This document shows positions 3,623 to 28,675 of a DNA stretch of 64,000 nucleotides, piece after piece (within the stretch, counting starts at the first letter, position 1; each line of letters starts with the position of its first letter). Source of the stretch: Amphiscolops sp. MND2022 (taxonomy: Eukaryota); NCBI GenBank assembly GCA_964187785.1, contig OZ076410.1:71672001-71736000 (forward strand), read 5' to 3'. The notes beneath the pieces are model-generated. The model had not been told where the DNA came from, did not search any database, and was given only the letters and a program-made list of their open reading frames with translations. The position numbers were made by a program, and so were the translations under genes.

Positions 3623-3637
3623 CATTTCAAGGTTAGC

Positions 3638-4231
3638 ATGCCTAAAATTATTGCTGCCAGTACCTTGTTCAACTCAATTGAACAACTTCAAATCAGTTTG
3701 CGTAAACAACTACGAGAACTCGTCCACGTCGGTCCCGGTTTCAGCCTGAACACAGAGTCCGTGAACAAGTCAAAAGACGTTTACAACTATCTAAAGTCCG
3801 AAGAACTGAAAAATACGAGAATATTCCTGTGGCACGATCTGATTAACAATACTATCACACCCCACAAAAGTAATAACTATCAACGGCAAAGTGTAAATCA
3901 GCTTGTGGCTTCATTGAGAAGTCTCAAAAACTCATGCGGCATAGTTTATTGTCAATATACAGGATCCCCGGATATCTTTGAAGACCTGAGAACATTGGAC
4001 TGCCCAATCATCTAAGTCACGACAGGTATTTTGAGCAAGTCAAAGCAGCGCAGTGAAGTACTCGTCGAGAAATACAATGCCTTACATCAATCCAGCGATC
4101 TCGAACTCAGATCCCTAGGCGCTGTCGTACATTATTATCCGAATCTGAGGAAGATCTTGAAAACAAGAGGCACCACGAAGAGAACTCACGAGCAACGAAG
4201 AGAGGCAAAGAGAAAAGGAGAAGACAATTAA
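3638..4231 (+). pseudogene. LTR-encoded ~197-aa ORF, SGNH/GDSL-hydrolase-like fold inferred; one in-frame stop at 4013-4015
   Basis: ORF-track segments 3560-4015 and 4031-4231 share a frame; the TAA is CAA in the 3' LTR copy. Motifs IIAAS, PGFSLN, WHDLINN, YCQ, ALHQ. Confidence 0.7.
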
Positions 4232-4400
4232 AGGTGAGCTTTTGGAGTCTAGGGCTCAGAGCCGCTGTTGTTACCTCTTCACAGCTTTTCGAATTAAAGG
4301 TGATCTTTTAGAGTCTTGAACTCAAAGCCCCGTTAGTAATTCTTAGCCATTAAAACTCAAATAGTTTGAATCGTGTTTTTCCAAGTCATCAGCAAAATCA

Positions 4401-5244
4401 ATGCGTAAACCGGAATTGAACCTCAAGGAACCCGATCAAGCACAGATGTGGCTCAAGGCGTTCGAGAGGCGAGCGCGGGTTGAAAAGCAAAGGGACATCG
4501 ACGCAACACCTGGAACTAGTGGACCACCAGCTGTCGCTGCCGTAGCGAAAGAATATCAAGTGACTGATTTCTTCATGAGCGATTGCGGCCTCGAAGCGTT
4601 GATAATGCTCAGTAGCCTCGTCGCGCCCAGAAACATCGAAGACATGAAATTCATAGATATTCGTAAGCATCTCATAAATTACTTGAAGCCACAAGAGAGA
4701 CTGGTGGTTGCAGAACGCACTGGCTTCCTTCAGATCTCTCAAGGGGGAGAAGAACCAGAAACCGACTACCTTGCTAGGATCCGAGAGGCTGCACGTTATT
4801 GTAAGTTTCTCGATCTCAAAGCTCCTCCGGATCCTGAAGCTGAAATGATCCGAATACAATTCATCGCCGGACTACGGGACAGCGAATCAAATCTCAAGTT
4901 GCTTGAAGCACTCAAAGCAAACAACAATTTGACTTTGGAAGAACTGCTTCAGCTTATTCGATATAGTACCCAGGCCAAGAGTTTTGCTGAGAGCTCAGTT
5001 CATCAGTCCACTTCAAGTGTAATTGCCTATGCAGTATAATAATACAAAAGATCTGAGTCGCCGTCAGAAGCCAGAGCAGTGTGGACGATGTGGACGAAAG
5101 CCATTTCACCTACTTTTTGAGTGCCCTGCTAAGGATGAAAAGTGCCACAATTGTTCCAAGGACACTATTCTAAAAGGTGCAAAGCAAAAAGACAATAAGC
5201 ATCGCGAACTGAGGGGAAAACTTATCGAAAATCAAACGCATTAG
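4401..5244 (+). pseudogene. Gypsy-1 gag (frameshifted) with Cys/His knuckle
   Basis: 212-aa ORF with YLARIREAARYCKF...IRIQFIAGLRD, followed by CGRCGRKPFH...C...CHNC. Confidence 0.85.
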
Positions 5245-5339
5245 TGCACCATTTTGGGGAAGAACAAGAATTCGAAGCTCCCGCCTCATCTGAGGAAACT
5301 ATGTAGTATGTAGAACAAATCGCAACTGTAGAAAAAGTC

Positions 5340-8160
5340 CATCACATTGGAAGCAAAGCTGAATTTCATGACATCAAGATAAATGGTCATGACGTTCGAA
5401 TGCAGAACGACACTGGTTCTTCAGTGACCATTATCCCAACCAAAAATTGGCGGGAAATTGGCTCTCTAACCTTGAGCACTAGCCCCCGATAGATTGAAGC
5501 ATGAGATGGACACCGAATGACTTATCTTGGTCATCTAAAGTGTGAGATCCCATGAGAAAGGAAAATTCATAGCGTTGATGTTGCACTTATCGAGTTCGAG
5601 AAGGAGTTAAAGGAGTTAAAACCTGTTTTGCGTCGCGCTCCGAAAGTTGCACTTGCCATGGAAGACCAGGTCAAGATTGAATTGACGAAACTTCAGGCAC
5701 AAAGAATCAGCGCCCCAGTCGATCCAGGAGGTGTCATGAATGCTTCGCCAGTCGTGTAGCAAAGGAAGAAAAACGGATTTTTTTCGGCTTTGTGCAGACT
5801 TCAAAGTTCATGTAAACGATAAGATCATGACTGAAGACTACCCTCTTTCCGACATAGAAACATTATTTCACGAGCTGGAAGGATCAAAATTTACGTCAAC
5901 ATTGACTTATCATCTGCTTATTACCAAATAATGCTGGATGATGCAGCGCAGGAACTTTGTGTCATCAACACAACGCTGGGTCTCTTCAAGTTACTCAGAC
6001 TACCTCAAGGAATGGAAAACGCATCCGGAATGTTCCAGCGAACAATCGAGAACACTCAAAAAGGATTGGCTGGCACTATCTGTTTCCAGGACGACGTACT
6101 GGTACACGGAAGAACAAAAAGTCAATGTGAGAAGCGTTGGAGGGCAGTTTAGGATAGCCTGAAAGACAAGGGGTTGACCATGAACGAAATCAAGTCTGGA
6201 AATGTCATGGAGAAAACCACGTTTCTCGATTTCACAATTTCAGGAAACGGGATTGAGGCTGATGATCGCCTTGTCAATAAAGTCAGGAAAATCCATCCTC
6301 CTCAAAGTGTTAAGGAAGTCGAACAATTTTGTGGGTTGGTCAACTTCTACGGCCGGTTCATCTCAAACGTCACGTCGAAAATTGCCCCAATATCTGATCT
6401 GAGGAAGAAGTCGGAGGCTGAGTTCCTGTGGACCGACAAATGTCAACGTGCATTCGAAAGGCTGAAGTCCGAGCTAGCATCGAAACCTGTTGTTCAGCCC
6501 TATTCTCCGAAAAAGGAAGTAACGATCACAACTGATGCCTCTGAGAAAGCTTTTGGCGGAGTCTTATCTCAAGAGGGGAACCCTGTCATTTATGTATCGA
6601 AGACATTGTCTCAAGCTGAGCAAAGATACTCTAACATTGAGGGTGAAGCTCTAGGGATAGTTCTTGTGCTAAAACGGTTGAAGCAGTTTTTACTTGGCCG
6701 GAAATTCAACCTTGGAACTGATCATCTTCCCCTGGAATTCATATTTGCTCCAAACAAGGGACCCTCAAAATCGGTATCACCAAGGATCACAAGATGGGCA
6801 ATTTTGCTGATGGTTTTTGATACGAGATTAACTACAAAGAAGGTTTCTCGATTCCTCATGCTGACGCTATGAGTAGACTGAATTTCGATAAGGTTGACGA
6901 CGAGTGCAGTCTAGTCAACTACTTGAGTTTCAATCTTGATGAATTCTGTGTTCATTTTGCCGTGCATAAACTCATTCCATTCGAATTAACAGGCGTGTAA
7001 TTGATGGCGATTGGAAAGAATGTACTCAAGTAGAGAGTGTTTTCAAGAAAGTATCTGGTTTCCTCACAGTCGCGAATGGACGAATGGACTGCTATACAAC
7101 GGAACTAGAACTTACATTTCACCAAGAATGCGGAACCTCGTAACTGAACGAGCCCATGACACGAATCCTTGTGTCCAGGCGACTAAGAACATGGTGAACC
7201 TAATGTCTTGGTGGCCTGGGGTAGGAAAAGATGTTGAAACATTCACAAGTGCCTGCTCTGAATGTGGAACAATCCGACCACTAACTGAGAATTCGATCGA
7301 TACTTGGCCAGATGCACAACCATGGGAGAGACTACATATGGATCGGGCTCATATCCAAGAAGTAGGCAACATTCTTATTATTGTCGACGCTGGTTCTGGT
7401 TGGATAGAAGCGTTCATATGCAGCGATCGGCTCACGGAAAAAGTCATACCTTGTCTGTCCGCCGTTTTTGGGAGGTTTGGGGTCCCGCACACTTTAGTTT
7501 CCGACAATGTAAAGGAATTTATCAACGACAAAATTGTTACGTGGTTACAGGCGCAAGGCGGCACCAAATTAGAGAGTCCAATCTACAATCCAAGGAGTAA
7601 TGGACTTGCCGAACGGGCTGTGCAGACTGTAAAGAAAGCATTGAGGGCATGGAACTTGTCTCTTCGTGTCAGCTTCCTTGCATTTCTGCAGCGAGTCCTG
7701 TTCAGACACCGTAACACTTCTTCCGTGAGAGGGAAGGCTCCCTCAGAAGTTCTGCTGTCTACTCCCTGCTGTCATCAATTATCCCATCGGAGAGCTTGTA
7801 GTTTTTCGTGCTGGACCTCACGCTGCGTCTTTTCCTGCGAAGTATGTTGTTCGGAAATGCAATAATACAGCATGGCTCTTTAAGGAAGATTCAGAGGTGT
7901 CCGAGGGAACACTTCTAGCAAGTACTAGCCAAATTGCTCCCTTTGTCTGTCCAACTACCGTTGCCCCTGATCTAGTGACGGCTAGATCAACTACAGATGG
8001 TGCTACGACCACGGGAGTGGCGGAACAAACTTCGACATGCGTTACTAGAAGAGACTCGTCTTTGGTTGTGAAGTCTTCTATCACTCCCGAGGTCCCGATT
8101 AGGAGGTCTGCACGAGTCAGGAAACCGAACCCAAGATTCAACAACTTCCTTTGCAAATAG
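5340..8160 (+). pseudogene. Gypsy-1 pol (protease, RT, RNase H, integrase), fragmented
   Basis: QNDTGSSVTII protease; RLPQGMENASGMFQ...FQDDVLV RT; TDAS...RYSNIEGEAL...TDH RNase H; PWERLHMD...VSDN...SNGLAERAVQT integrase; C-terminal RRSARVRKP. Confidence 0.92.
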
Positions 8161-8184
8161 CCATGAGAACTGTTGGAAGGGGGA

Positions 8185-8810
8185 TGATGTATATACTGAT
8201 TTAAGCCTTTATTATATAATGATGTATTTGACATATGTTTTACTTTAGATGTCGATGTCCTTTTGACTTGTGCTTTCATAATTGCCGTCTAGGGAACACT
8301 AGCTTTTATAGAAAAGCGTCTTGATCTGCAAGAAACACGACAATTGGTGTCCAGACCAGGATACATTTCAAGGTTAGCATGCTTAAAATTATCGCTGCCT
8401 GTTCCTTGTTCAACATCAATTGAAGAACGTCAAATCCGTTTGCGTAAACAACTACGAGAACTCGTCCACGCCGGTCGGGTTTCAGCCTGAACCCAGAGTA
8501 CGTGAACAAGTCAAAAGACGTTTACAACTATCTAAAGTCCGAAGAACTGAAAAATACGAGAAGAATCTTGTGGCACGATCTGATTAACAATACTATCACA
8601 CCCCACAGTAGTAATAAATATCAACCGCAAAGTGTAAACCAGCTTGTGGCTTCATTGAGAAGTCTCACAAACTCATGCGGCATAGTTTATTGTCAACTTA
8701 CAGGATCCCCGAATGTCTTTGAAGACCTGAGAACATTGGACTGCCCAATCATCCAAGTCACGACAGGTATTTTGAGCAAGTCAGAGCTGCGCAGTTAAGT
8801 ACTCGTCGTC
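8185..8810 (+). repeat. Gypsy-1 3' LTR, truncated; carries a frameshifted copy of the LTR ORF from ATG 8379
   Basis: Alignment to the 5' LTR; follows the PPT; similarity ends where the LINE fragment begins. Confidence 0.9.
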
Positions 8811-9185
8811 AAAAAGACATCCCCGATTCCAATTTCACCATTTGTGACTAATAACTCAGGATGCGGAACAGTATCGAATGCTTTCGAGAAGTCGCTATAA
8901 AAAGATATTATATTAGCTCGTGAATTGTCATCGAGACCATCATTGATTTTGTGCAACTAGGCTAGTATATTTGTTAAAACCGACCTTTTTTCACAAAACC
9001 ATGTTGCTCTTTGGTAACGGTTTCATCAAAGAGCTTGTAAACATCTTCGTACAAGCATCTCTCGAAGACTTTGCTGACAATGTTGAGAACTGTAATCGGC
9101 CTATAATTGGAGACAACTGTTTTATCACCTTTTTCATGTATTGGAGTGTTTTGACCTGTTTTCCACTTTTTTGGTAAATTTCTTA
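8805..9185 (-). mobile_element. Non-LTR retrotransposon (CR1/L2/Jockey-like) RT fragment
   Basis: Manual translation PIHEKGDKTVVSNYRPITVLNIVSKVFERC...QHGFVKKRS...SDFSKAFDTVPH with one stop. Confidence 0.9.
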
Positions 9186-9834
9186 AACGCTAAACGTTTT
9201 TGAAAAACAAATTCAGAGTGACGCTCAGCGGAGCCGCGAGTTGCTGGAAAAAGACTGGAGGAATTCCATCCGGGCCCCTTGCCTTTCAAATACCAAGCGT
9301 TTTCAAATAACATTGTTTTCCCTTTGCGGGAACGGAGAGCAATCGAAGAGCGAGCTAGTCTTTGCGACAGGGATTGCAATTAATTGCAATTGCGATAATT
9401 AAAATTGCATGAGCCAGAAATATTTACTAATTGCAATTGCAAAATTTTATATGTTGATATTTGCAGATGCAATTGCGTTTTAGTATATTTCAGAATCTTA
9501 CAATTGGACAAGAAAAGTGGTAAAAAGCAGCTTGTAAGATCTCTCGCACAAAAAACAAAACTATGAAGAGAAAACATAAAATATGCTCAGTGTGAAAAAA
9601 CGCTTTGAAAGCAAGCACTGCATTACCCCTATTAAAAAACAAATTTTGTTGTAATTAAGGTAATGGACAAAACTGCATGGCCACTTATGTTCATATCTTG
9701 CTGAGCGAGGTCGAACAGGACCAAAGCCCTAACGGGAACGGAGATCGCGAAGGGACCGTAGTGGAAGCTGGTCTTTGCGATGGTGAGAACGAGCGTGCAT
9801 TCATCGGAGATGCCCCACATTTCAGTTTTTAGAC

Positions 9835-10095
9835 ACAGTATCATTTCCTGTTTATCTATGAATTCATTCAATGGAGTATCTAAGGTTTCTTCCAATTTCT
9901 TGAATCAGTTTCAAATTTCGACTTCCATACAGACATTGATTTTCGTCAGCGAAGTTTTCTGATCGACGAGCTGTTATTCATTTTTCTCCATTTTTAACTT
10001 AGTGCCCTCTTCAAGTTCATCTTTGAGTTTACGCCTACCGTGTTCCTCGCATAGTTTGCAAAACCAGATGAGTCTTTTACATTTCTTGAATGCAT
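9835..10095 (-). pseudogene. Possible LINE ORF1 fragment (end of PHD-like finger plus coiled coil)
   Basis: Manual translation KCKRLIWFCKLCEEHGRRKLKDELEE followed by charged helical sequence with stops; close to the RT fragment on the same strand. Confidence 0.4.
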
Positions 10096-10429
10096 TCAGT
10101 AATGAAGATGGAAGACCCCAACATAAGTTCCCGTGATACCAAATACCAGACATTTGGCAAGCGAGGCTTCCTTCTTATCACTCATTTCCACATTCACCAC
10201 AAGGATATTTTGCAGAAGGATTTCTCCTGCCACCATTCATTCCGAATCAGATATGCCCCTTTTATCCATCTAAGGTTTTTGAAGGCATAATTCTGACGAA
10301 GGATGACTACAAAGACTGAAAGACTGAAGTCACTTAAATGTAATAACTTCAGGTTGTCTTTTGTCTTCTTTGTCTCTCTGATAAAATTTACTCTTCTTGG
10401 GTTTTTTCTTCCTACCGAATGATCCAAAG

Positions 10430-10672
10430 TTATTGCGTCGATTCCAGATTGTGTTGAAGAAATTCAACTCTAGTGCATCCGACAGAAAGCTCGAAGTGTA
10501 TTGAAGTCTGCTTCAGCTTTCTACTTGATACGAGTTTTCTTCTAGCGTCTTTGATGAGGTTTCCTGTTTTCTGTAGGTCTTTCAAGATATTCTTTGTGCC
10601 AAGTCGCTGACAGTGGGTTCTGTAATCGTTGCTGCTGTCCTTTGAGGTAGTGTTATTCACGATGTCGTGCCG
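10430..10672 (-). pseudogene. Third, diverged fragment of the SGNH-like accessory ORF family
   Basis: RHDIVNNTTSKDSSNDY...HCQRLGTKNILKDL...KLVSSRK matches WHDLINNTITPHKSNNY...YCQxTGSPDIFEDL...ILSKSK. Confidence 0.65.
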
Positions 10673-13029
10673 GTTGAAAAAATTTTTGGTGTGACGTAGG
10701 CTCCCACAGAATGTTCTTGTTTGGAAAACTACCAGTCTATAGTCAGCAAGAACTTACAATGGCTAACAAAGGGGAGAGTTCCCCAGAGGAAATCAAACCT
10801 TACCTCATGAGAAAGCACCAACACCAGCAGATGACAACGCCTCAAACAGCAATACAACCCTTCAACGCAGTCACTTCCAACGCTACAACCAGCAAAACAC
10901 CAACTCCACCACCACAACCAGAACGCAAATAGTTCGAGGGAAAAAAATGCTACTGTGGGAAGACTGGGCACCGGAAGATCGAATGCCGAGCAAAGGAGCG
11001 AGACGAAGCGAATGGAATCACAAAAGAGGACGCAATTAAGATGAAATAACCTGCTGACCCCGACAAACTAAAATAAACCCCTAAATTGGTCTGCCAAATT
11101 TGCGGGGCATTGGGCTCGTGATTGCAGACGCCGAGTAACAAAAGAGAGCAGTTCTGAATCTGGAAAGGTTCCATACACCACCAACTCACAAGAGGACAAC
11201 AAGAACAAACGATAAGACCTAATAACAACGAACCCTCAACTCAATCGAGGTCGTAAAGGAAGACGATGAACAAGAAAGCTACTCTGACGAAGACCTTCTA
11301 CAGGGTTTTTGAAAACGCCACAAAGTCCCCCCGATAACAGCGACGCGCGAACGACCAGACTGACTAACAACACTTCACAAGGACGTCCAATGAAGACATG
11401 GCAGCCTTCACTGGACAAACGATCGAAAGCTTACGACGTCTATCAGCAAAAATGCAACCACAATGAAAATGGGAAGGGAAATTCATTTCCACACACTGGA
11501 ATTAGATTCTCTCCAGTCGCTGAGATTGACGATGACAAAACGGTGAACTGGCAGAACAACGAGGCAGGTGGACGATGCCAAAGAGATGAAGAGTAATCAT
11601 CTAACTGATGACTACGGCTCTACTACAAACACTGCAAGACACACGGCTTAGTACTAAAAATCCTGTAAAACAAACTAGTATTAACCTTAAAAGTAAAAAA
11701 CATTCAACAAAACGGAAATTCTTGTGCTTAGTCCAACTTTATAAAAAAACAAAAAATAAAAAACGTTGTACTCCTGGACACTGGTACAATTCAAAGTGAC
11801 ATGTCGCAAGCTGAATTACAAAAAACACTACGGCTCACCCCGAAGCTGTTTTCACCGAACTACCAACTTCAAAATTTAAAGTCCATGTCGCAAATGGTAA
11901 CCTCGTCGCAGTTCGTAAACAAGTTTTACTTAGTATTTACGTTACCGGAAAAGTATTTGAAACCTTTTTAGTCTTACCAACCATGGGAACCATTTTAATA
12001 GGATTGTCATTTTTTGAAAGACTGGGTTAGTTTAGACGTCAAAAAGCATCTTGTACACTTTCCCAGCAACATGATGTCCACGCAAGTACGCCAACGTAGA
12101 AACATCGATTCAAAACCGGGTTAATCAAGTTTTGTTCCAACTCCAGAACAGTTATCCCTCCTCTCCACCTAGTAATTACACAGGTCCACAGCGACACGGA
12201 AATCTCACTCAACTGGAGCAGTCGAGGGAGCCCCGGCATTTAAGCGGAAGACCTGTTTGCTTGTTTCACCAGCAGTGGTGGTCCTTGACGAGGGCAAGAC
12301 AACATTTCAGGTCACCAATCCAATCAACCAGACGTACGCACTCTATGCCAACACCACCTTGGCACCTTTCCGAATTTCCACACCACATCAGGCAGCAAAC
12401 ATCACGCCCATGCCGGTGGAACACTTGAACTTGATCACAGCGTACCAAGACGAGGCAAAAGCAGTGATCATGCTTTTGTGAACCCTGACACGAAAGCAAC
12501 CAAGTGGTAAACTACACCAGAGACGTGCAATGAACCAGACAAACTCAACGCCACAAAACGACGAATTTAGGATGAGACCCTGGCTCTGCAAGAACTGAAG
12601 AATCTGAACCCGTCCAAACCCGAATCACAACGGATGAACTTCACATGGCACGACTCGCTTCCCACACCGTCTGAACGGTTACAAGTAAAGGAGTTGCTGG
12701 TAAAGTACAACTCCATTTTTGCTAGACATCGGCTTGATATTGACATGAACAACGATTTTAATGTTATGCTAACGCCCCAACTTGAAGAACCATTACTCTC
12801 AAAGTCTGCCTAGTCCGACAAAACTGAAGGACGATTTGCTTGTAGAGTTAGCTTTAAAGCAAGAGTATGGGATTATAACTACTTGACCTCATAGCAAATG
12901 TTTTTCCCCAATTTATGCTCAACGAAAACCAAAGGGAGGATTTTAGTTGATTCGAGAACATTTAGCCATCTCATCAGAAATGACTACAGCGAACGAAACT
13001 ACCCAGTGACTACAATTGCTGATGCTGCG

Positions 13030-13512
13030 TTTGACTCACTTCAACTCAATGTCTGGTGGTCGTCGTTTTGGAGAAAGATTGACAAAAGTAACGTCAATTG
13101 ATAAGCTTCTGTAACGTTCGGCATAACATCACAGTAATACCAAAGCTGTCCCAACACAGCAAGGATTGTATAAGGTTTCAGTATGTTTATCAAAACAACT
13201 ATGCTCTTCAACAATTATGTAATTGACGTGTTACATGTACAGTTGAACTTGTTTACAAACATTAAAACAAAAGACAGACAAATGATTGACGGGCAGGTAC
13301 ATTCGTTTGGGATCGTTTAGGGTCACGGTAAAAAAGGGGAAAAGTCGAAAAAAAGGAAAAATGGTCGAGTCCCAGAAGTGTTAGAACCCGGTTCTCGAAC
13401 ATGGGTTAGGTATTTAACCACTATGCCATTTGGAGTTACATGGTCAAGGTTGAAGGTCAACCATAATGGGAAATTTAATTAATGTTAACAAAGTTGCCTT
13501 CAGTCGGCAACA
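13030..13512 (-). repeat. Pao-A 3' LTR
   Basis: Aligns with 29043-29508; starts TGTTGCCGA on the minus strand right after the PPT. Confidence 0.9.
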
Positions 13513-16500
13513 TCCTCCCACCCGAAGGACGAGGAGGAAAGTACAGGGACAAGTTTTACTAGAAATCGGATACAACAACCTGATTGCGCTTTCAGGTTCG
13601 CGGAACGTGCTGTACTATCTTGCCCATAGTTCAGCGATTCAACCCAAGCCATTGGATAGTAACTCCGGGGGCTACTCTTTTCCCAAATCCAAACAAGGTT
13701 GCCTGTTGGGAGCTTGTGAGGTGAGGGAGTCTGCCACTTCGACCTTCGGTCGAGTGATGGCACATACTCATTGAGCAACCTGGACCAGATCGCATTTGCG
13801 TACGCTTTCGCTCGCATATGATTCTTTCGATGATCAAAATAAGTCGCAATTGCCAAAGACGATATACTTGAACAACGGTGCCCTAAGAGAAAATGATTCG
13901 GTGTGACCGCATCGAGTTCATTAGGGTTAGAGCTAACAGCTGTTATGGGTCGAGCGTTAAGACTTTGATCCACAAGGGCAAACGTAGTACGAAGAACTTC
14001 ATCAGTAAATTTCTGATTGCCAATAATTGAAAAAAAGACCTGTTTGCAGCTCCTCACAAGTCTTGCTCTTGCTCCGCTAAGGTGTGGCGCAACCGGGGAG
14101 GATTGAACTTTATTTTATTCCTCTGTCTGCCAAGAACGGCGGTGCACCGGAGTTCCAAGATCCGAACGTGGATACTAATTCCATCTCAGCGGCGACGAAA
14201 TTTGTCTCATTAACGTGCCAAATGGTTGACGGCTTTCCTCGTCAAGCAATGAACTTCTCAATACCCACGATGCAAGAACTCGTGTCCATTGAAGATACGA
14301 TTTCGATGTGTATTGCGCTTGTCGTTTAACACCAGAAAAGAAAGCACCATCTTATCTTAATTGACATTTGAACAGACACGTGGAACGGTCCGAAGTAATC
14401 AACACCTTTATTCCAAAAGACTGGTGGTTGGGGACTGAGGCGTTCTTTCGGGAGGTCAGACATCATTGGCGTGATTGTCGGAGCTCGACGTTTTCGACAA
14501 AAGAAGCAACTGGAATGAATGCTGCAAAGGACTGAACGAAGTTTCAAAACACCGTAGTTCTGTTGAACAACAGCTTGCAAATAGTCGACATCCTGGTGAT
14601 GATGACTGCGATGTAAGTGCGACAGAAAAAGTGTCACAACAGGGTGACGGGCGTTGAAGAGGATCGGGTGTTTCATACCGATTGCGACACCTGCAAGACG
14701 CTGAATGTGACCGGTAGACCGAACGAGTCCAGCGGATCCGACGAAGGGTGAGTACTGTATAAACGGACTTAAACGACTTATGCACTTGTTCTCAAGTAAT
14801 TGCTTCCGAATACAAGAAAAGGATTCGCCTTGGGCTAGGTACGGCACTTTTTACTGAGCGATGTCCATTTGAAACGGATCTGGAAAACTTTCGTCCATAG
14901 TTCGGTAGCGTTTGGATGAACACGCATTACATATGCCATGATTCGAAGAATTTTGGCATAGGAAATATTTTTCTCCCAAGGAAAAACATTCCCAGGGGTA
15001 ACGATACCTTCACTGTGACAAAAGTTACTTTTAGAGGCAATGTTTCAGATTTCGGACTTACCAATAGGCCTTGTACGTTAGACGTTGAAAAAAAAACAGA
15101 AAAAGTGCGTCTTCAGCCAGCAACTATCGAAGAGAGACTCAGCGGTTACTCCCCGGGTACCGGCGTCTGCGAGGATATCTGAAGTGCCAACGTGGTTCCA
15201 TTGGTCCACTGTTGTGAGCTCAAGGATCTCTGAAACTCTGTTCGCACGAGTTCGGGCAACGAGATCGCCACGAAAGGTGGCTGTTTTCACTCGAATGAAG
15301 ACATTGAATCACAGTTGTACTGTCTGTCCAAAGAGAAATTCTATCTATCGTGTTGGCCAGTGCCTTCAGACTTTCATTTTTCAGACACGAGTTTGCCACG
15401 AAGAAATGCGACAGCACAAAGTATCTCCTGAGAGCTATCGCCAAATACATGAAGTTCGACAGAATCGACAGGGGAAGGAAAATAGCATCGAGGATATGCT
15501 AATTCGCTGAGCATGGGAAGACCTTTTCTCCAATGTAGGAAACGTTGACAGATATCTTCAGTCACGTGGAACGCCATTGTTGGCCATGAAGACGCCAAAT
15601 TTCTTTGAGAAGCAACCTTGAGGACACTGTAAGGTGCTAACAAACCGATCGGGTCGAAGACAGAAAAAACCTGCCTCAGTGTAACTCGTTGAGTTATGAT
15701 CAAATGATTGATAGTATCAAAACCACGACTGACTACTAAGGTGTCTTCAACATGGTTTCATCTCAATCGGTGGACTTGAGATGTTTCTTCTGACTCCTGG
15801 GGGGGAGGGGTGATGGAAATCGATTTCTGTTCCGGTTTAGTTGCGTCATTGCTCAATTGTGAAGCGAGGTTTGGTACGTCACTTACGAACTTCGTCAGCT
15901 CGAAACCTTCAAGTTTCAAAAGGACAACGAGTTCATCGGCTCTGTGGATTGCTTTCAATTCCGAATCTAGAGAATCCAATTAGTCATTAGTCATCCATGT
16001 AGAACTTTAACTTCACTAGCAAAGCTGCGGCAGGAAACTTGTCTTCGTGGTCGAAAGCGGTCTTTCCTAAGCCAAAATTAGACCAAGTCGGGGAACTTTT
16101 GGCGCCAAAATGTGTCGGATGTATTTATAAACCTCCACATCGCGTGAGGGGTCCTCCCGCCACAAAAAGCTAACCGACTTCTGATATCCCGGTATTACTC
16201 CAACTTGCATAAACATAGCCTCAAAATCCGCAGAACCTGGGTACCTATGTTCTCAAAAACGGAAAATCACATGGAGAAGACTCTGTGAAAGTTCAGGACC
16301 AGTTAACAAACAATTGTTGAGCGAACAGTCATGACATTTGGAGGTACCGTTTAAAACTCTTCGCACTTTACCGGGTGTTTGCGTTATGCGGGTTAACAAC
16401 GGCATGATGCGGAAGATACCACTCTCGGTCGGTTCTCTCAGAAAGGTTATGAGGTGACACTTTGGTTATGTAACCTTTGTGGAGGTCATCCTGAATAGTC

Positions 16501-18521: not shown

Positions 18522-18724
18522 ACATCATCGATTGGGCGGATATCATCAGTTTTGGGGCGCACATAATCAATTGGGCGGACAACTGGATGATCATCTGATT
18601 GCTACACAGCCAAAACAGCACTGTGCGAACAAGTGAACGTGTACAGTGAACCACCACTGGTGGTGATCTATACAAAACTGTGTGCGCTGCAAAGCGGTCT
18701 CGTCTGGGCTCTCCTGGGTGTATT

Positions 18725-19080
18725 GTGTACTCTGGGGCTTGGGATACTTCTGCAGCCTCTGGGAGATTGTATTCGCAGTGGTATTACTGGAGCTCTTGGG
18801 TATAAGGTGTACTCTGGGGTTTTGGGGTACTTCATCGGTTTGTTGGGAATTGTATTCACAGCAGAATTTGGATTCCTGTGGTTAGTTAGTGTACTCTGGG
18901 GTTTTGGGCTACTTCATCCGTTAGTTGGGAATTGTATTCACAGCAGAATTTGGACTCCTGTGGTTAGTAAGTGTACTCTGGGGTTTTGGGCTACTTCATT
19001 GGCTTGTTGGGAGTTGTATTCACAGCAGAATTTGGACTCCTGTGGTTAGTAAGCGTACTCTGTGGTTTTGGGCTAGTTCA
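18725..19080 (+). repeat. 82-nt tandem repeat (~4.3 units) in the Pao-B leader
   Basis: GTGTACTCTGG starts at 18725, 18807, 18889, 18971 and (variant) 19053. Confidence 0.92.
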
Positions 19081-19126
19081 AAATGGCTGAACCTAAGAGA
19101 ATTGATTACAAAAAATTGACAACTAC

Positions 19127-22100
19127 TTGAAGAGTTCTATCGATAAGCCACAATGGGAGAGCAACATGAGAGCAATTCAAAACTTCGAGACAAAAATGGG
19201 TGAAATACATGCTGAGCTACGCAAAGCAGACACGACGAAGGAGAAACTCGCAGACCTTCTACCGAACCGACAAGACCTACTGCTCAGATGGAAGAGACTC
19301 GTCGCGGCGAACACAGCGCTCTTGAAAGCCAAGTATCAACCAGAATGGTCGTATAGCAAAGGTGACAGTTTTTGCAGATATCGGAATGAATTAGACTCCT
19401 TGGAAACACGACATAAAAACATTGGTCAGATGCTCACAAGGATGAGGAGCCTAAAGAATGAAGGACAGTTGAAGAGGTTCCTACAACTTCAAAACTCCAA
19501 AGAGAAATGTGATGAAATGCTTCGGAAAAACGAAGATGAAATCAATAAAAATCGGTATACTCTTTGCAACTCAGATGATTACAGAGAATTGGTAGAAACA
19601 AACAAAAAAACCTTCAAAAGGAGCGATGAAATTGTGGCCGAGATGAATGAGTTGTTGAAACACAGTGGAGATACTTCAATCTACAGTGAGTTGCATCGTA
19701 TGGAGGGAGTCATGGCCCGTGCCAGGGTGAATTGGCAAGAGCAGCAACTAAAGTCCCGCGACACTTCTCCTCAAAAGAACGCGAATGAAGAAGAGACACA
19801 AGGTACCGTTGGACCCAATTCGTTTGTGAATCGTTGTATTAATGAGGTGAATTCGTTACCCGGGGAAAGATATCAATGTGCAAGCAAGACACATTCAAGG
19901 GGCAACAGAACATCAGTTAGTTCAAAGTCAACTACTACAAAACGAGTGATGCTCCTAGAATTGGAAGCAATGAAGAAACAAGACGAAATCGATGAACAAC
20001 TAGCTGCAAAGAAACGTCAAGCAGAAATCCGAAACACGAGGAAACGGATAAACTCACAGAAGAACTCGAAATAGCTAAACTCCAAGAGGAGAAGGCAAGG
20101 ACTAAACGAATCGCAGAGAAGGAAATGGAAGTCGCTCGGGCGGAGGGAAACAGAGCAAGCACAAGTTTGCGAAGCATCTCGCCAATACCCATCCACAGCG
20201 ATCCGTTCGAAAAGGTACCTTATTGGCTTGATGAAAATGGATGTGACAAAAAACAACGAAGTTTGGAGAAGAGGTATCCAGAATCGCACTGGCCAGCGAA
20301 CCCATCAAACCACAACCTGACCCTTTGCCACACACAACGCAAATGTCCCACCTGGCTGCTAAAACAGCGCAGCCGACTATGGTAAAGGATGGCACGTCGG
20401 CCAGTCAATTCGCGCCGAACGCTGCATCAGCGAAGATGCAAATGAATGAGACTTTTCAACAGCATGTGCAGTTTGGGAACTTCGAACCTCCAAACCAACC
20501 AATGTTAAGTAATTAAACGAGAAATGGCACATTGCCTCCACCAGTGGCACCCTCAGCTAAATACTCTGCCCCCATACAGAGTCAGTTCGCGACATCAAGA
20601 AATGAAGCAGTGAGCCTACCAGCCAGTTTGCCGAAGCTGAAGCTGGCAGAACTCTCAGGCGACCCATTGGAATGGCCTGAGTGGTCAGGGTTGTTCCTCT
20701 CGACCGTGCACGCTGCAAACATCGACGCCAGCTTGAAGATGAATCATCTCAAAACGCTGGTCACTGGGAAAGCGAAAGAAGTGATAGCTGGACTAGGCTA
20801 CACTGGAGACATGTATGATATTGCTTGGAATACCTTGGTCGCGCACTTTGGAAGACCACAAGTGGTAGTTAACGCACAATTGAGACGAATATACACCTTT
20901 CCGCCAGCGAAAGCGTACGACTCCGTAGCATTGGTCAAATACTCGAGAAAAGTTTCAAGTTGTGTACAAGTTCTGACGCATATGAACCATGTTGGCGACT
21001 TGCAGTCAGAAGGCGTCCTGAGTAGTGCGACCGGAAAATTGCCAATGAACATGAAGACAAAATGGTTGACGCACGCGAGACAAAATGCTAATTACTACAT
21101 GGGGCTAGAAGCGTTCAGCTTATGGTTGCAAATGGTAGCAGCGGTGCAGGAAGATGGTCTCATGACAGGCAATCCCAACGCCGACAAATGGACAAGTAAA
21201 GACAAACCAAAGAACTCTACTTTCTCAACTTTCGCTGACGACAATTCCGACAAAGAGACTGGTCAAGATTGTCTTTTGAGAGATGGTAAACATCCTTTGT
21301 GGAAATGCGAGAAGTTTCTGAAGATGACATGTCAAGCGCGATACGAGAAAGTCAAAGAGCTGAAACTCTGTTTTTGCTGTTTGGCTGTTAAACATGTAGT
21401 GAAAGACTGCACATACAAAGCGTGTGGAGTCAAAGGTTGTAACAAGCGGCACCATGGATTGCTACATCGCGAAGCAAATGAACGGCCGGAAGATAGTGGA
21501 GTAGAAGACCCACAACAGAAGGCGGAGGCGATTTCTGCATTTTGCTCACTGAAGAACAGTGGGATTCTGCCAGTTATACCTGTCATCATCCAAATTGGAA
21601 AAAAGCAAGAATCGACCTTGGCGTTGTGTGACTCTGGAGCGAGCCTATCGTTCATAGACAAGAAATTAGCTGACAAGGTAAATGCTCACGGGGAAGAAAC
21701 CTGAGTGTGGCTGGAATACATGGGACCAGTGATGTGAAATGTGAAGGATTCACTGTGGGAATTCGTGGCAAGGCAATGAACGACACACCACATGACAGTT
21801 TACACTCATCCAAACATAGACGCCGGAACAAAGATCTACAACTTTCAGGAGCTCAAACTTGCCAACCCCATTTGTCGGTCCTAAGCGAAGAAACATTGAA
21901 ACTCAAAAATGTAAAAATGATATTGGGACAAAACTGCTACCATATTCATCGGCCTGAAGAATATAAAAGCTGCGCGAATGGTGAGCCTTGGGCAGTAAAA
22001 ACGAAACTTGGATGGACTCTCTGTGGACCACTTCCACGGCAAAGGGCTGTGCAGATGACTGCATCTTGCGTAACAGCTTCTGAAGATGATGTGCTGGCAG

Positions 22101-25100
22101 AACAAATTAAAACTTGGTGGGACATTGAATCCTACGCACCACCCGCATCCCGCTGTGATGTATCTGGAAGGTCCAAGGACGACGAGAAAGCGTTGCAGAT
22201 GCTAGAACAAACCACAAAGTTTGATGGTGAAAGATACGAAGTTGGACTCCTCTGGAAAAGAAGGCACCCCTTCTTGCCGAACAATTATTTGTCGGCATTG
22301 AACCAAATGAAATCATTGGAGTATAGACTTGAAAGGCAGCCAGAATTGAAAAAACTTTATCAAGACACCATCAAAGTAGATGTTGAGAAGGGACTCGTCA
22401 GAATCTTAAAGCAGGAAGAATTAGAAGCTACAAAATTAGAAAGACAGTGGTATGTACCACATCACCCAGTGCAAAACCCAAACAAACCTGGAAAAGTAAG
22501 GCGAATGTGCAACGCAGCCTCTAAATTCAGAGGAATTTCACTGAACGATAACCTTTTGACAGGACCGGACTTACTGCAGAATCTAATTGGAATCATCTTC
22601 AGGTTCAGAGAACAAAGGGTCGCCATCACCGCCGACATTGAGGCGATGTTCCTCCAGGTGAAAGTACCACCGGGAGATTGTAAAGTGTTGAGATTTTTAT
22701 GGAGAGACAATCCAAACGAACCCGTTAAGGTGTATGAGTATGGAAGACATATCTTCGGAGCCAAAAGTTTGCCGACTTGCGCCAATTATGCTCTGCAACA
22801 AGTTGCAGGAGATAACGCACAGGAGTCCCCACAATTTACCAAACTGATAAGGCAAACTTCTATATGAATGACTTTGTCAAGTCTGTTCCCAGCGCGGAGC
22901 AGGCTATTGAAACCTACAATATATTGAGAGCGATGTTAGCAAGGGGAGGCTGTCACTTAACAAAATGGATTAGCAACTGCGAACAGACTATGACATCTAT
23001 CGACCAAGCAGACAAGTCACCGTCCTCTAGCAAAACCTTCGAAGCTGAGCCGACCTCTCCATTCATCTTGGGATTGCAATGAAACGTTGATGCAGATAAT
23101 CTGGAAGTCTGCAGAGACATGCAGAAGGAGATACCGGTGAAGATAACTCAGCGAGCGGTGTTATCCCATGTTTCAGCTGTGTTCGACCCTCTGGGAATAG
23201 TGTCTCCTTTTACTATCAGAATGCGACTGCTACTAAAATCAATATGGAAGGAGGACGGACAGTCGTGGGATAAAGAACTGAATGAAGGAAATCGACATGA
23301 GTTTAAGAAATGGGCATCCGAGATGATTCATGTGAATCAAATGGTCCTTAAAAGAACATACTTCGAGTCTGGAGTGAACAAAGTTGATCTACTTATCTTC
23401 TCAGACGCTTCGTTGGAAGCAATGTGTATGGTTGCTTATTTGAGAAAACAAGACAATGGCGAAGTGACCTTCGTCATTGGATAATGCAGAGTAGCTCCAA
23501 TTAGGAACATGACAGTGGCCAAGTTGGAGATGCAGGCAGCAGTCTTTGGAGTAAGACTGCGTGAACTCATTTTAGAAGAACATGATATTGAAGTAGACCG
23601 AATCGTACACTGGACCGATTCAACAACGGTCCTACATCGACTTCACGCAAGCAACAACAAGCAACCTGTCTTTGTAGCGAACATAGTCGCAGAGATCCTC
23701 GAAAATTCAACTATAGACCAATGGCGACATGTGGAAGGAAAAGTGAATCCTGCTGACATTGGAACTCGAGGAATAACAGTTGAAGCCCTGAAAGAGAGTG
23801 AGTGGCTCACAGGGCCGGCATGGCTTACCGAGACAGAGGACGCCTGGCCTAAGGCGCCTGAAAAATTGCAATTCAGCATTCAAGAAGAGCAAGAACCAGT
23901 CATGGAAGCTACTGTGATGGAACCCGCATTCGAATGGGAAAGATTCGGGTCTTTCAAGAAGATGATTTGAGTGTTCTCATACTGTCTAAGGTAAAAGAAA
24001 AGGAATTCTGGAGAAATTCTGACAGTTGAAGAACTCAATGCGGCAAAACTGGCAGTTTTGAAGCGTTGTCAGAAGGAAAGTTTCCATGATTCCTACGAGA
24101 AGATCTACAAAGGGCAGCCGTTGCCGGCATCACTTCAATTGAATAAATTATCGCCGTTTCTGGATGAAAAAGCATTGCTGCGACTACATGGCCGACTGCA
24201 GCATTCAAGATCAAGTTAAGAGATCAAACACCCGATCTTGTTGTCAGCAAAGCACTATGTAGTCATCAAGTTGATTGAAGATATTCATCGAGCGAATTTT
24301 CATGAAGTCACAGAATACGTCAGAAGTGTTCTGAGGCAAAAATACTGGATTATTGGATTGCGAAACGCTTTGAGGAACGTCAAAGCGAAATGTGATAATT
24401 GTAGAAAGCAACGAGCTGGAGTGTCTCAACCATTTATAGCTGATTTACCACGAGAGAGATTGCAGGAACGAACATTCCCCTTTACCAACACTGGAGTTGA
24501 CTATTTTGGTCCCTTTGGAATGAAGTTCATGCGCAAGATCATGAAGATATGGTGCTGCTTCTTCACCTGTTTGACAACTAGAGCAGTACACATCGAAGTT
24601 GTTCCATCTTTGGAAGCAGAAACCTGCTTAACTGCTATCACACGGTTTATTGCCCGGAGAGGCAAACCTGCTACAATTCTGAGCGATAATGGGACGAACT
24701 TCGTGGGTGCAGCCAAAGAAAGGAGAGATTGTATAAAAGCGTGGAATCTGTCAGACATTGAGATGTCTTTAGTTCAAAAAGACATCAAGTGGAAATTCAA
24801 CCCTCCTGGAGCCCCTCATTTTGGAGGAATCTGGGAACGATTGGTCCGAAGTTGTAAAAAAGCAATGATGGCTGTATTGGATGGGCGATCCTTGACGGAC
24901 GACGTCCTTATAAAAACTATGTGTTTAGTAGAGCAGACATTGCACGATAGACCACTGACTAGTGTTAGTGCCTATCCTGATGACCTGGAAGCTTTGACAC
25001 CGAACCACTTCTTAATGGGAAGAACTATTTTAGCCACACCGTTTCTACCAGACGGTCAACGTTACACAGATTTGAGACGGGTATTCAGAGTGTCGCAAGC

Positions 25101-25446
25101 TTATTCAGATATGATCTGGAGCAGATGGACAAAAGAATATATGCCGGAATGGAATGTGCGTAATAAATGGAACAAAGATGACGTGAGACAGCTGAAAGTC
25201 AACTATTTGGTTTGGGTCGTGTATGAAAATGTGAAGCGGTCCAACTACAAGATGGCGAGAGTATTGGAGATGCAAGAAGGAAGCGACGGCAGAGTTAGAT
25301 CTGCGACAGTGGTGACGAAAGATGGCAAACTCAAAAGACCAGTAGTGAAACTGGCACCCCTGTTCTATGAAAGTGTTTTTCGGGAGAAAAACAGGGCCGG
25401 CAATGTTGGCGTCAGACACCCGCAGGCAAAGAAAGTTGAATTGTAA
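19127..25446 (+). pseudogene. Pao-B gag-pol polyprotein (gag/DUF1759, Cys/His knuckles, protease, RT, RNase H, integrase) with stops and frameshifts
   Basis: GDPLEWPEW, CFCCLAVKH, LCDSGA, WYVPHHPV, ADIEAMFLQV, VFDPLG, FSDAS, GVDYFGP, LTPNHFLMG; the final ORF ends inside the 3' LTR. Confidence 0.95.
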
Positions 25447-28032
25447 CATGTTGGATGAGAAACCAGAACTTAAACTCTAAAAAACTTAGATGAAATTTTG
25501 AAGAAAATCCAATCATCACAAATCTTTAAACCACCCCAAATGGGTTTTCTCGAAGACTGTTAGTTATAGAGCCTTGAAACTTGGTACACATATGCACGGA
25601 CCTAACACACACACACCGGCCAAGTTTCAAGGTCATTACCCCATTATAACCCACTTTACCCTTCACATGTGTGGTGTTCAAGGTCATTATGACAAAAATG
25701 TAAACTTTGTTATTTACCTCTATGACCACATTAGAATGTAACTCTGTTGCAATTGATGATATTTACATTGTGTAAACATGCCTTAGAGCCCACCTAACCA
25801 ACATGCTATACCCACACTATGGTTTGTTTACATAGCCAATAACTTAATAATTCACTCAATTGTCATTTGTTTATACTTCATATTTTGACTTATATTTATT
25901 GTAGAATTGTAAACGATATGTATACCACAACTAGTTAGGCACAAATTGATTGGAAAGCTGTATTCAAGTTGGGTCTTACCACCATTTCAATTCTCAATTC
26001 ATTTCTTCACCTCTTTTCGACTTTTCGCCAAAGACTTATGAAGACTTACGGAGAGTTGGACGTGTTAAGAGACAATGAAGAAGTGCAATTCGGGATCATT
26101 GGATCCTAGTAAGTCAAGATACAGTCCTTTTAATCTGAGAAGCAAGCAGTGTTCGGTAACAATCCGCAGTGTCGAACACCGAATTCAGGGCGGCGTAAAG
26201 TTTTGTCAAGTGAAGGGATCAAGCAGCCGTTACAGTGCATCTTGAAACTCGGGTGATTGCTCAACTTCTCCAAATGGACTGTTAGAACTGCTTGAGGTTG
26301 TCCGAACTTTCTTTCAAGTGTATGGAGTGCTGGTATATTGCACCACAGTATGCATAATCAGAAATAGTTGCTTTTACTTTTCCACTGACAAGCGTTTCCA
26401 GATACGTTAACTTTACATCAGCTGTCAGTGGCGCCGAACCTTTGGCACTCTGGAATTGTCCGTACCTTTCGTGCCACTGTAACGGGTCTCCATTATATAC
26501 GGAAAACTTCCATTCAGGCAATGGATCTTTACGGCTCAGCATTTCAACTAACTCATTTATGGTCACTGGATGACTAAAGCAGTGTTTGGTTGTGTCAATT
26601 CATATGTGGTTCCAGTCGAGGATCCATGTGTTGAAACGAATCTAACACTTTGATGACTCCGCAGTTGTGTTTGATTTGAATTCGGACCGGTAGTGTTTAT
26701 TGACTGTTGGACAGAATCGGGAGTAACGTCGGTCTGTACTTCACCTGCAGACATAGTTGCGATTGAACCAACAGGTGTTGAATGCTGGAATGGGCGGGCA
26801 TACGGATTCAACAACGGTCATTGCGATTGGCTCACGGACGTTGATGGGTAATGATTGCCAATTGCAGTGTTTTGTACTGCCGGAAAGAAAACCCAATTAC
26901 CATTGGAGTTCGGAGAGAAGTTCGTGGAATAACGTTGGGCAAACGGCGATTCCGCTTGGGGATGACAGATTCTCACCATGAGTATTTGCATTGGGGTCAA
27001 CCGGGGGAACTGTCACACCCGTCAACGCTTCGTTCAATGCTGGGGTGGTTGTGTTGTTAGGTATCCGCACCGATTCATCAATGGCAAAAACACTATCAGT
27101 CTCATGTCGGTTTCAGGTACCAGATGTTATCACTGTTTTTTTTCAGTATTGTCGACCAACTCTCTTGTTCGGCTTATTTTGTTAGCTGCTTCATCATTTA
27201 ACTCAGCTTCGACGTGATTATGACTCGTTTCAGATATAGCATCTTCCAATTCTGTTTCCTTCAATTTGCTTCCCTATTTGCCGACAATTTTCTTCGTCAA
27301 GCACTTCAAGTTCAAGTCGAGACATCTCTTCTTCTTCTCTCAATTCTTCTTCTAGCATTCTCGACTTCATTTGTTTGCCTCTCAAGGCGGCTTCGTGTTT
27401 ATTTTTGGCTTAAATCGAGTCAGCTGTCGCTTGTTTTTCAATCTCCTCACGGTTGAGTTTGGCTATCTATTGCTTCTTCTTACGTTGAGAGAAACAGAGA
27501 CTTGAGAGGAGCGGGAATTGCGTGCGCTATTCAGTCTTTTTTGCGTCTTTTTTCCGGAAGACTGCGATACGTGCGACGCCTCGGAAAAACTTTTTTCGTC
27601 GTCAAAGTATCTACATAGGCCCTCGCGTTAGCAAGGTTGTTATCGTTGGAGACTGTTAATTCGTTCAACCAAGATTCGAACTCGACGTGAGGGATGTGGC
27701 GTTGTCACTCACACTAACTAATAGATTCAATTCATCGTTTTTTGCTACTGCTTTTCCCAAAAGTTCCTTATATGAAACCGTATGGTGTTCGACAACTACT
27801 TATCTCTTTTTTAAATTCACAATTTCATTCAATGCCACTTAAGCATTCTCAAACTCTTGTTGACTTTTGTCACATTTTTCTCTCAACTTATCATCCATAA
27901 TTGACAGGAAAATATAGGGCAGTTGAATATTCTGTTACAAATATTACAAACAAACCACCGTAACTATGAAATGGATCGTTTCAGTGGGGAAAGGAGCTTG
28001 AAGGTCTTCACGACTCCACCATAACCCTGCAG

Positions 28033-28675
28033 CTAAGCGGGGACACAGCAGAGAAGCGAAAATCTTCGGGCGCCAACAGGGAGCTGTTTGTTTTTCAAAG
28101 CGCTTCGTCTTCGCAGATTATGTCTTTTGGGTTGACTCTTAGCTACAATTCGGTTCAAGTTACAGCTGTTTCGTAGTACAATAGAAAGAGTTTTGAGTTC
28201 TACTTCATGTTTCTGGTGGAGAGCTTGATAGGATTTTACCAGTGAATTGCTCTTTTTCCCACGTTTAGAGATGATGTCTTTCAAAATACTAGTGGTGAGA
28301 AACTTTCGCTTCAAGAAGCCGTAAATGTCTTCCGTGCTGTCACGTCGGTAGTAAAAGAAAGCTGCAACTCTTGACCGAAACTGATTGAGTGTATTCACCA
28401 GTTGCTGAGGTGAGGGTCCAAGAAGTATAATTATTAGACACTTGCCGACTAATCGAGTTTTGTTAGCACGTCATGCCAAATTGCGAGTTCTCTTCGATAG
28501 GGAAAAAAGTCTTGCAGAACAAACTGTACAGTTTGACGGGGGTTTTACAAGAAGGATTGAAACTGAGTCCAGGGGCTGTATACGCTTTTTTTGCATACCG
28601 GTTTTCCTTTTTTGGCTTTACCGGAAAATTTTTCTAAAGCGGGCGAAGAGAACATGCTCCAAGGATGAAAACCAT
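28033..28675 (-). pseudogene. SGNH-like accessory ORF in the Pao-A leader, between PBS and gag, in element sense
   Basis: Manual translation MVFILGACSL...APGLSFNP..(fs)..IWHDVL..SISRQVSNNY..(fs)..QLVNTLNQFRSRVAAFFYYRRDSTEDIYGFL...IISKRGKKSNSLVKSYQALHQKHEVELKTL; colinear with the Gypsy-1 LTR ORF. Confidence 0.72.

Follow-up and report, generated by a model that had tools for sequence, protein, structure and literature searches.

A putative SGNH-like first gene carried by LINE, BEL/Pao and Gypsy retrotransposons

Why should one small open reading frame (ORF) recur near the 5′ end of retrotransposons that belong to different classes? The question is raised by a stretch of 64,000 nucleotides (nt) from Amphiscolops sp. 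MND2022 (contig OZ076410.1 of assembly GCA_964187785.1, positions 71,672,001 to 71,736,000 of the forward strand; hereafter the window), in which we found four copies of an ORF family that we call ORF0, as it is the first open reading frame of the element RNA. It encodes a protein of ~200 amino acids (aa). Two copies lie in Gypsy units, one in a BEL/Pao element (Pao-A) and, since the fourth sits in a long interspersed nuclear element (LINE), the window carries the family in all three classes (Table 1). Our observations show that the copies are related, point to long-term constraint on the protein, and lead us, with moderate confidence, to regard it as a very divergent member of the SGNH fold.

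Searches and structure predictions were run on natural intact copies or on those parts of the window copies that are unbroken. With these unbroken parts as queries, word-based protein searches retrieved three intact natural copies from the same assembly (ENA ERZ25074608): P0001 and P0003, of the Gypsy type and 197 aa long, and P0040, of the Pao type and 199 aa long. P0001 and P0040 align by BLASTP with 33% identity over 164 residues (E=6e-31), and a 64-member family profile recovered all four copies from a six-frame translation of the window at E values of 2.6e-38 to 4.5e-08. The matches were 2.6e-38 (3557-4012) and 3.1e-12 (4016-4228) for the first Gypsy copy, 3.3e-33 (8448-8795) for the second, 4.7e-28 (28470-28036) for the Pao-A copy and 4.5e-08 (10753-10433) for the LINE copy, with weaker pieces also present in other frames. 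Such E values put the likeness far above chance, and the relationship that a first-pass annotation, made from the letters of the window, had proposed for the ORFs at 3638-4231, from 8379 and at 28675-28033 is real. The first 125 codons of the first Gypsy copy are 81-86% identical to full-length (197-aa) natural copies, and the last 121 codons of the Pao-A copy are 81% identical to intact P0040.

The family is large and old. When 1.84 billion representative proteins were searched exhaustively with the profile, the yield was 787 clusters (at 50% identity) with E≤1e-3, and 446 with E≤1e-10, drawn from at least ten separate data sets. Almost without exception they are stand-alone proteins of ~200 aa, and none of the 787 clusters is named or has a Pfam domain. 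No relative was found in IMG/VR, and the JGI metagenomes contributed just three short contigs with family members, whose context was unusable. N-terminal extensions of some database members were considered as coiled coils and rejected; they look like upstream read-through by gene callers.

What has been preserved in so diverse a family was counted in 254 full-length members (numbered as in P0001), which share an overall identity of only ~30%. Near-invariant residues are A7, S8, S9 and L10 in the region corresponding to SGNH block I, P33, G34, L35, S36 and N38 in that of block II, W65, H66, D67, N70, N71 and H76 in that of block III, and Y104, R107, S133, H150 and E156 elsewhere; among the 254 members S8 is found in 247, G34 in 224, H66 in 244, N70 in 225, N71 in 243, H150 in 247 and E156 in 240. 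The motifs that had been listed, in their shared order, from the window ORFs are these same near-invariant positions. The C-terminus consists of helices followed by a tail rich in Lys and Arg. P0003 (10001-10594 in both L003 and L004, two loci with Gypsy-type copies; 32 member sequences) is an intact ORF and yet has A7V and D67Y at near-invariant positions; because the called flanking genes are common to L003 and L004, it is probably a duplicated, inactive copy there, and not an active lineage.

Where in the Gypsy element does ORF0 lie? To place it we aligned seven copies of the long terminal repeat (LTR), some in the window and the others in two full elements located elsewhere (L002 and L003), and found that the LTR is only 158 bp long (TGTTGT...ACGACA). 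In the terminal 3′ copies the likeness stops directly past ...ACGACA; internal-side 3′ copies are directly preceded by the polypurine tract GGAAGGGGGA; and in 5′ copies the primer-binding site (PBS) TGGTGTCCAGACCAGGAT comes next, with the ORF0 ATG 27 nt further on, 48 nt past the end of the LTR. Neither ORF0 nor a PBS follows the terminal 3′ LTRs of L002 and L003. The LTR boundaries and the PBS therefore put ORF0 in the leader, between the PBS and the gag ATG at 4401, a place that corresponds to its place in BEL/Pao elements, and it is not encoded by the LTR; the order in an intact element is LTR-PBS-ORF0-gag-reverse transcriptase (RT)-RNase H-integrase. The first-pass annotation had located the ORF inside both Gypsy LTRs, which has to be corrected, as the LTRs are confined to the two 158-bp intervals of Table 1 and the copy from 8379 belongs to a tandem unit. 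This Gypsy family tends to form tandem units with a common LTR (LTR-internal-LTR-internal), as also in L002, which has three LTR copies at 4082-4237, 9807-9962 and 14680-14835; the second unit of the window is cut off at ~8813, where it abuts the remnant of a LINE ORF2.

The assignment of the minus-strand copy to the Pao-A leader, 370 nt past the 5′ LTR, stands as originally made. An intact relative, L001, has the same layout, with an LTR at 9170-9643, ORF0 at 10001-10600 and gag from 10768. Altogether, Pao ORF0 was found in five lineages in the arrangement LTR-ORF0-gag-pol with Peptidase_A17, DUF1759 and DUF5641, and gag-pol is intact around ORF0 in the BEL/Pao elements of P0354 (NCBI GCA_029980085.1), P0281 (a cluster of 432 members), P0249 and P0295. 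The P0249 ORF occurs in identical form on 18 contigs of the assembly that includes the window. To our knowledge, BEL/Pao elements are restricted to metazoans. The window profile search found no family member in the leader of Pao-B, the nested element that splits Pao-A, and a third, degraded BEL/Pao element (~48600-54600, plus strand; Peptidase_A17 at 51891-52865) is likewise without an ORF0 copy. Between its LTR and gag, Pao-B has a different ORF of 315 aa (19127-20074, plus strand), rich in charged residues and without a Pfam match, and just upstream of it, at 18797-19080, three overlapping 120-nt copies spaced by 82 nt (an 82-bp tandem repeat). A separate arrangement is seen in L101 and L102, each of which has two family ORFs (5884-6432 and 9001-9648) that are 97% identical and separated by 3 kb. 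Behind the first comes an ORF of 433 aa that matches nothing in Pfam, and Pao gag-pol follows the second; probably a Pao element has here been inserted into another or has recombined with it.

The remaining copy had been noticed as a fragment at 10672-10430. It is indeed a family member, but it extends over 10753-10333 and stands first among the ORFs of a decayed LINE rather than in an LTR element: remnants of LINE ORF1 and ORF2 lie directly downstream on the same strand, as detected by tblastn with queries from another assembly, ERZ25071359. That assembly also shows the family within an intact mobile unit. The member P0235 is present there at three genomic loci. Their identity is 99.3-99.5% within a span of exactly 4,982 bp (8914-13895), outside which they are unrelated; this unit consists of ORF0 (211 aa), ORF1 (333 aa), ORF2 (943 aa) and an (AAT)n tail. 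ORF1 has a Cys/His finger of the PHD pattern (recognized by the Cys/His pattern alone, the Pfam PHD match being just E=4.4), a coiled coil and an RRM-like end, and ORF2 has the Exo_endo_phos and RVT_1 domains of an apurinic endonuclease (APE) and an RT. In a third assembly, ERZ26859043, the very different members P0064 (L010) and P0075 (L012) are each followed by APE and RT remains. Within the window, 1585-1734 (minus strand) encodes the final 50 residues of an ORF2 of LINE type, 46% identical to the ORF2 of L096; it may be the far end of the degraded LINE, interrupted by the Gypsy element, the intervening stretch being without a match.

The presence of one family in LINEs, BEL/Pao and Gypsy elements implies at least two transfers between classes. 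In what direction did they occur? In a maximum-likelihood tree of 99 representatives, the Gypsy-type P0001 forms a clade with the LINE-adjacent P0064 (support 100/97), its closest relative with a readable context, and the Gypsy version was most likely derived from a LINE-type donor. The three LINE-context tips do not cluster together in this tree. The exchange envisaged in the first-pass annotation is borne out in so far as unrelated superfamilies carry the family, but it is not limited to Gypsy and BEL/Pao, and the wider distribution suggests that one accessory module was taken up again and again by mobile elements of very different kinds. We tentatively propose, while granting this whole proposal somewhat less than even odds, that an unannotated and very divergent SGNH-derived ORF0 family has moved repeatedly among LINEs, BEL/Pao and Ty3/Gypsy elements, that purifying selection keeps it as their first gene, and that it serves a class-independent step, most plausibly one that involves lipids or membranes.

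Has selection acted on the protein? Between lineages the proportion of synonymous differences (pS) is 0.72-0.94, which is saturated, and that of nonsynonymous differences (pN) is 0.34-0.57. The ratio of nonsynonymous to synonymous change (omega, dN/dS), which had been put forward as a check on the earlier proposal, comes to 0.41-0.46 when the window copy is compared with intact copies of the Gypsy type. Among close copies omega is 0.56-1.03; values near 1 in very close copies are expected from decay after insertion. All four window copies are broken, and the ORF is intact in recently active elements, as in the identical ORF on 18 contigs and the three LINE copies described above. Judged by these substitution patterns, the ORF0 protein is under long-term constraint.

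What kind of protein is it? AlphaFold models were obtained for P0001 with 64 natural homologues (predicted local distance difference test, pLDDT, 96.0; predicted template modelling score, pTM, 0.88) and for the core of P0281, a Pao-type member, with 99 homologues (pLDDT 97.4, pTM 0.91), and both show an alpha/beta domain of five strands alternating with helices. In Foldseek searches of the PDB with either model, almost all matches at a probability of at least 0.9 were SGNH proteins, with template modelling (TM) scores of 0.42-0.55, the exceptions being two designed scaffolds, 9hi4/9hi5. The matches include platelet-activating factor acetylhydrolase (PAF-AH) Ib (1vyh, 1wab, 3dt6), the GDSL-like lipases 3p94 and 1z8h, the acetyl-xylan esterase 7ddy and OatA (6wn9). 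In one search of BFVD, the named matches at a probability of at least 0.8 were mostly GDSL/SGNH proteins, esterases or hydrolases of phages and giant viruses (best E=8.4e-4). SGNH matches reached probabilities of 0.85-0.99, and most other folds 0.1-0.6 with TM scores of 0.17-0.35.

The conserved residues can be located along the predicted strands and helices. Ser8 stands at the start of helix 1, after strand 1 (residues 2-6), in the motif [GA]-A-S-S-L in place of G-D-S-(L); Gly34 follows strand 2; Asn70 and Asn71 follow strand 3 in W-H-D-x-x-N-N in place of G-x-N-D; and His150 lies near the C-terminus. S, G, N and H occur in the canonical order, and their spacing (8, 34, 70/71, 150) resembles that of Escherichia coli TAP, in which they are residues 10, 44, 73 and 157 (PMC10792757). 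The pair H66-x-x-x-N70 is near-invariant and has the same spacing as the "transposon-specific" H191...N195 of the ZfL2-1 esterase, whose partner S228 lies on strand 4 (PMC3905857); by spacing alone, the ORF0 equivalent of S228 would be Tyr104 or Cys105, not Ser.

Several results weigh against the SGNH assignment or against repeated transfer. The SGNH matches are weak (E about 1e-3 to 5e-2), and in the PDB no Foldseek match was better than E=1e-3, the TM scores being about 0.5. A Pfam scan of 64 members found no GDSL or SGNH match, and Pfam scans of the window pieces and the 64 members gave only weak matches, scattered and in conflict with one another. No SGNH match came up at E≤10 when all PDB sequences, 4c1b included, were searched with the profile and with phmmer. 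Comparison by hhalign with a TesA profile gave a probability of 0.3%, which we list here although it is uninformative rather than negative, because the profile (E. coli tesA and 80 relatives, all at least 88% identical) is too shallow. The Asp of block I is always replaced (by Ala7 in 245 of 254 members), and the Asp of block V is absent, the position three residues before His150 being Lys, Gln or Arg; the early observation that this Asp is missing is hence confirmed, with Ser, Gly, Asn and His kept across the 254 members. D67, H76, Y104, R107, S133 and E156 are near-invariant and are not explained by the SGNH template. As for the transfers, a single LINE clade was compatible with an approximately unbiased (AU) test (p=0.083), and the element context is known in just 10 lineages. 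The SGNH fold that the first-pass annotation had suggested is therefore backed by the predicted structures and their Foldseek matches, with nothing to match from Pfam, the PDB sequences or TesA. The support is remote, and some accepted SGNH enzymes work without the Asp acid (PMC10792757).

How might such a protein work? The reading that we prefer, with a probability of roughly 0.6, is that ORF0 is a divergent SGNH module, passed between classes as a first ORF, with a putative role in attaching the element particle to membranes or lipids. As the 5′-most gene, ORF0 would be the first to be translated on the full-length RNA, the next gene (gag or ORF1) beginning 169 to about 1,300 nt past it. Ser8 could serve as nucleophile, Gly34 with Asn70/71 could form the oxyanion hole and His150 could act as base; because the block V Asp is absent, the protein would either catalyse with Ser and His alone or function chiefly in binding lipids. 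On the model of the ORF1p esterase of CR1/L2 elements, it might attach the particle to negatively charged membranes or lipids, while the basic C-terminal tail may contact RNA or serve in nuclear import.

Would the protein need to be an enzyme at all? The chief competitor of our reading, which we consider unlikely though far from negligible, holds that the fold is SGNH-derived but not catalytic, as in Oskar, and that the protein binds RNA or protein much as an ORF1p-like chaperone would, by means of its basic tail. The missing Asp residues of blocks I and V and the Lys/Arg-rich tail fit this picture, Oskar has been documented as an SGNH protein without catalysis (PMC3905857, PMC10792757), and even the ZfL2-1 esterase is a poor catalyst whose binding to liposomes is independent of its active site (PMC3905857). 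Set against this, 88-97% of the 254 members, at ~30% identity, keep Ser8, Gly34, Asn70/71 and His150, a retention that is hard to explain otherwise and makes a role for these residues likely; Oskar, by contrast, is without a catalytic triad (PMC10792757). A less probable alternative is that the protein is not SGNH at all and that its likeness is convergence at the level of the fold: a flavodoxin-like alpha/beta protein in which W-H-D, H76, R107 and E156 would form another active or binding site. It would account for the missing sequence and profile links to SGNH families, for Foldseek values of only about 1e-3 to 5e-2 with TM scores of about 0.5, and for the several invariant residues outside the four SGNH blocks. 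Other alpha/beta folds, however, score far below SGNH, and do so consistently in two models and two libraries; the order and spacing of S...G...N...H resemble those of TAP (PMC10792757) and ZfL2-1; and SGNH esterases are already known in LINEs at the same 5′ position.

Two further explanations appear very improbable to us. That ORF0 is a component of Gypsy LTRs exchanged specifically between Gypsy and BEL/Pao, as first supposed, is understandable from the two copies that flank the Gypsy internal region in the window, but it is contradicted by the LTR boundary, which lies 48 nt ahead of the ATG with the PBS next to it, by terminal 3′ LTRs in L002 and L003 that have no ORF, by LINEs that carry the family within the mobile unit, and by the place of the window's own fourth copy in a LINE. 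Similarly, if the ORFs were functionless passengers, whether captured fragments of a host gene or chance ORFs kept by recent copying, one could understand that four of four window copies are broken and that omega is 0.56-1.03 in close copies, but not that hundreds of lineages ~30% identical keep the length, the start and about 20 near-invariant residues, that pN lies far under saturated pS between lineages, or that recently active elements (18 contigs; three LINE copies) have the ORF intact.

Is ORF0 related to esterases that retrotransposons were already known to carry? Kapitonov and Jurka reportedly described the ORF1p esterase of LINEs in 2003. The SGNH esterase domain occurs in the ORF1p of CR1, L2 and RTEX LINEs and in some Penelope-like elements, with ZfL2-1 available as PDB 4c1b; the latter is a weak esterase that binds acidic phospholipids and liposomes, and its authors propose a role in bringing the LINE particle to membranes (Schneider et al., 2013; PMC3905857). 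Like ORF1p esterases, ORF0 is a 5′-proximal retrotransposon protein with a predicted SGNH-type fold, conserved Ser, Gly, Asn and His, and a His four residues ahead of the putative oxyanion Asn. The two also share PAF-AH and 3p94 as their nearest solved structures, 3p94 being the top HHpred match of the known L2 esterase ORF1 (PMC4120745), and LINE hosts whose ORF1 has a PHD-like finger. Yet ORF0 is not a domain of ORF1p but a stand-alone protein of ~200 aa ahead of ORF1 or gag, it begins at strand 1 without an N-terminal coiled coil, it has neither the block V Asp (D279) nor the GDS Asp of ZfL2-1, and it is present in BEL/Pao and Gypsy as well. It is, moreover, invisible to Pfam and PDB-sequence profiles, whereas known LINE esterases are found by HHpred at probabilities of 99.7-99.9 (PMC4120745).

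The closest parallel among LTR elements is ORF3 of the bdelloid Vesta elements, a GDSL esterase/lipase common to Athena, which is Penelope-like (Rodriguez et al., 2017; PMC5408684). It too is an SGNH/GDSL accessory ORF of LTR elements that is common to different retroelement classes, but it lies downstream of pol, in the position of env, whereas ORF0 is upstream of gag; it keeps the invariant catalytic residues and was found by HHpred; and its hosts are Vesta and Athena as opposed to LINE, BEL/Pao and Gypsy elements. In the tree of the Vesta study, these ORFs and the esterases of LINEs are treated as independent captures (PMC5408684). Outside transposons, the alpha subunit of PAF-AH Ib and small bacterial GDSL lipases/acetylesterases (1wab, 1vyh, 3p94, 1z8h, 7ddy) are the best structural matches to ORF0 (TM 0.42-0.55, probability 0.9-0.99) and have its size of ~200 aa and its block order; they differ in being cellular enzymes with full Ser-Asp-His triads, are not transposon-borne, and show 9-15% identity and no profile likeness to ORF0. 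The OSK domain of Drosophila Oskar, which is non-catalytic and binds RNA, would share an SGNH-derived fold, an incomplete catalytic set and a place in ribonucleoprotein biology, but it is without a catalytic triad (PMC10792757), and ORF0 keeps Ser, His and both putative oxyanion residues.

In the searchable literature we found no report of this SGNH-like ORF in BEL/Pao. The role of esterase modules in retrotransposition is unsettled (PMC3905857, PMC5408684), and the present family adds a stand-alone SGNH-like protein, strongly conserved, that comes first on the RNA in three element classes of different mechanism. If our reading is true, a portable module serves a common, class-independent step of retrotransposition, most plausibly a lipid- or membrane-dependent one. 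The distribution shows that accessory genes cross the divide between LINE and LTR elements. The recently active copies offer a compact natural system in which esterase activity, lipid binding and particle localisation could be studied. There is also a practical side, as hundreds of clusters without a Pfam model are missed by annotation and may pass for host genes or LTR sequence.

Table 1. Retrotransposon features of the window, in order of position, with the basis of each assignment
Feature	Position	Strand	Description or basis
Gypsy 5′ LTR	2933-3090	+	158 bp, TG...CA; alignment of seven LTR copies
Gypsy primer-binding site (TGG...)	3093-3110	+	After the LTR in every 5′ copy
501-bp repeat in Gypsy leader	3122-3622	.	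Outside ORF0; 10-bp duplication CATTTCAAGG at 3112-3121 and 3623-3632
ORF0 copy 1 (Gypsy leader)	3638-4231	+	197 codons; single in-frame stop at 4013-4015
Gypsy gag-pol (gag, RT, RNase H, integrase), fragmented	4401-8160	+	tblastn with L003 proteins; Pfam domains of L003 products
Polypurine tract GGAAGGGGGA	8175-8184	+	Precedes second LTR copy
Second Gypsy LTR copy	8185-8342	+	3′ LTR of first unit and 5′ LTR of truncated tandem unit
Primer-binding site, tandem Gypsy unit	8345-8362	+	Sequence
ORF0 copy 2 (tandem Gypsy unit)	8379-8813	+	Frame breaks; likeness lost at ~8813, ~residue 145
LINE ORF2 (reverse transcriptase part) remnant	8822-9306	-	tblastn with L096 ORF2 residues 427-587, E=4e-27
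LINE ORF1 remnant	9773-10240	-	tblastn with L096 ORF1: 32% identity, 161 residues, E=8e-18
ORF0 remnant of degraded LINE	10333-10753	-	Profile positions 55-197, internal gap; first ~54 residues missing
Pao-A 3′ LTR	13032-13512	-	blastn
Pao-A pol	17653-13506	-	tblastn
Pao-B, nested, splits Pao-A	17652-26234	+	Lies inside Pao-A
Pao-A gag	~26569-26217	-	tblastn
ORF0 copy, Pao-A leader	28033-28675	-	Begins 370 nt past LTR; three frames, stops
Pao-A 5′ LTR	29045-29508	-	blastn against 3′ LTR 13032-13512 and L001 LTRs

Elsewhere in the window, three ORFs (44488-45237, 46714-47427 and 48632-49669) are without a match in Pfam. The 501-bp repeat of the Gypsy leader has another window copy at 40068-40590 (87% identity), and this ~500-bp repeat, of unassigned class, also gives partial matches at 2015-1834 and 9679-9829 and at 8188-9098 of L002.

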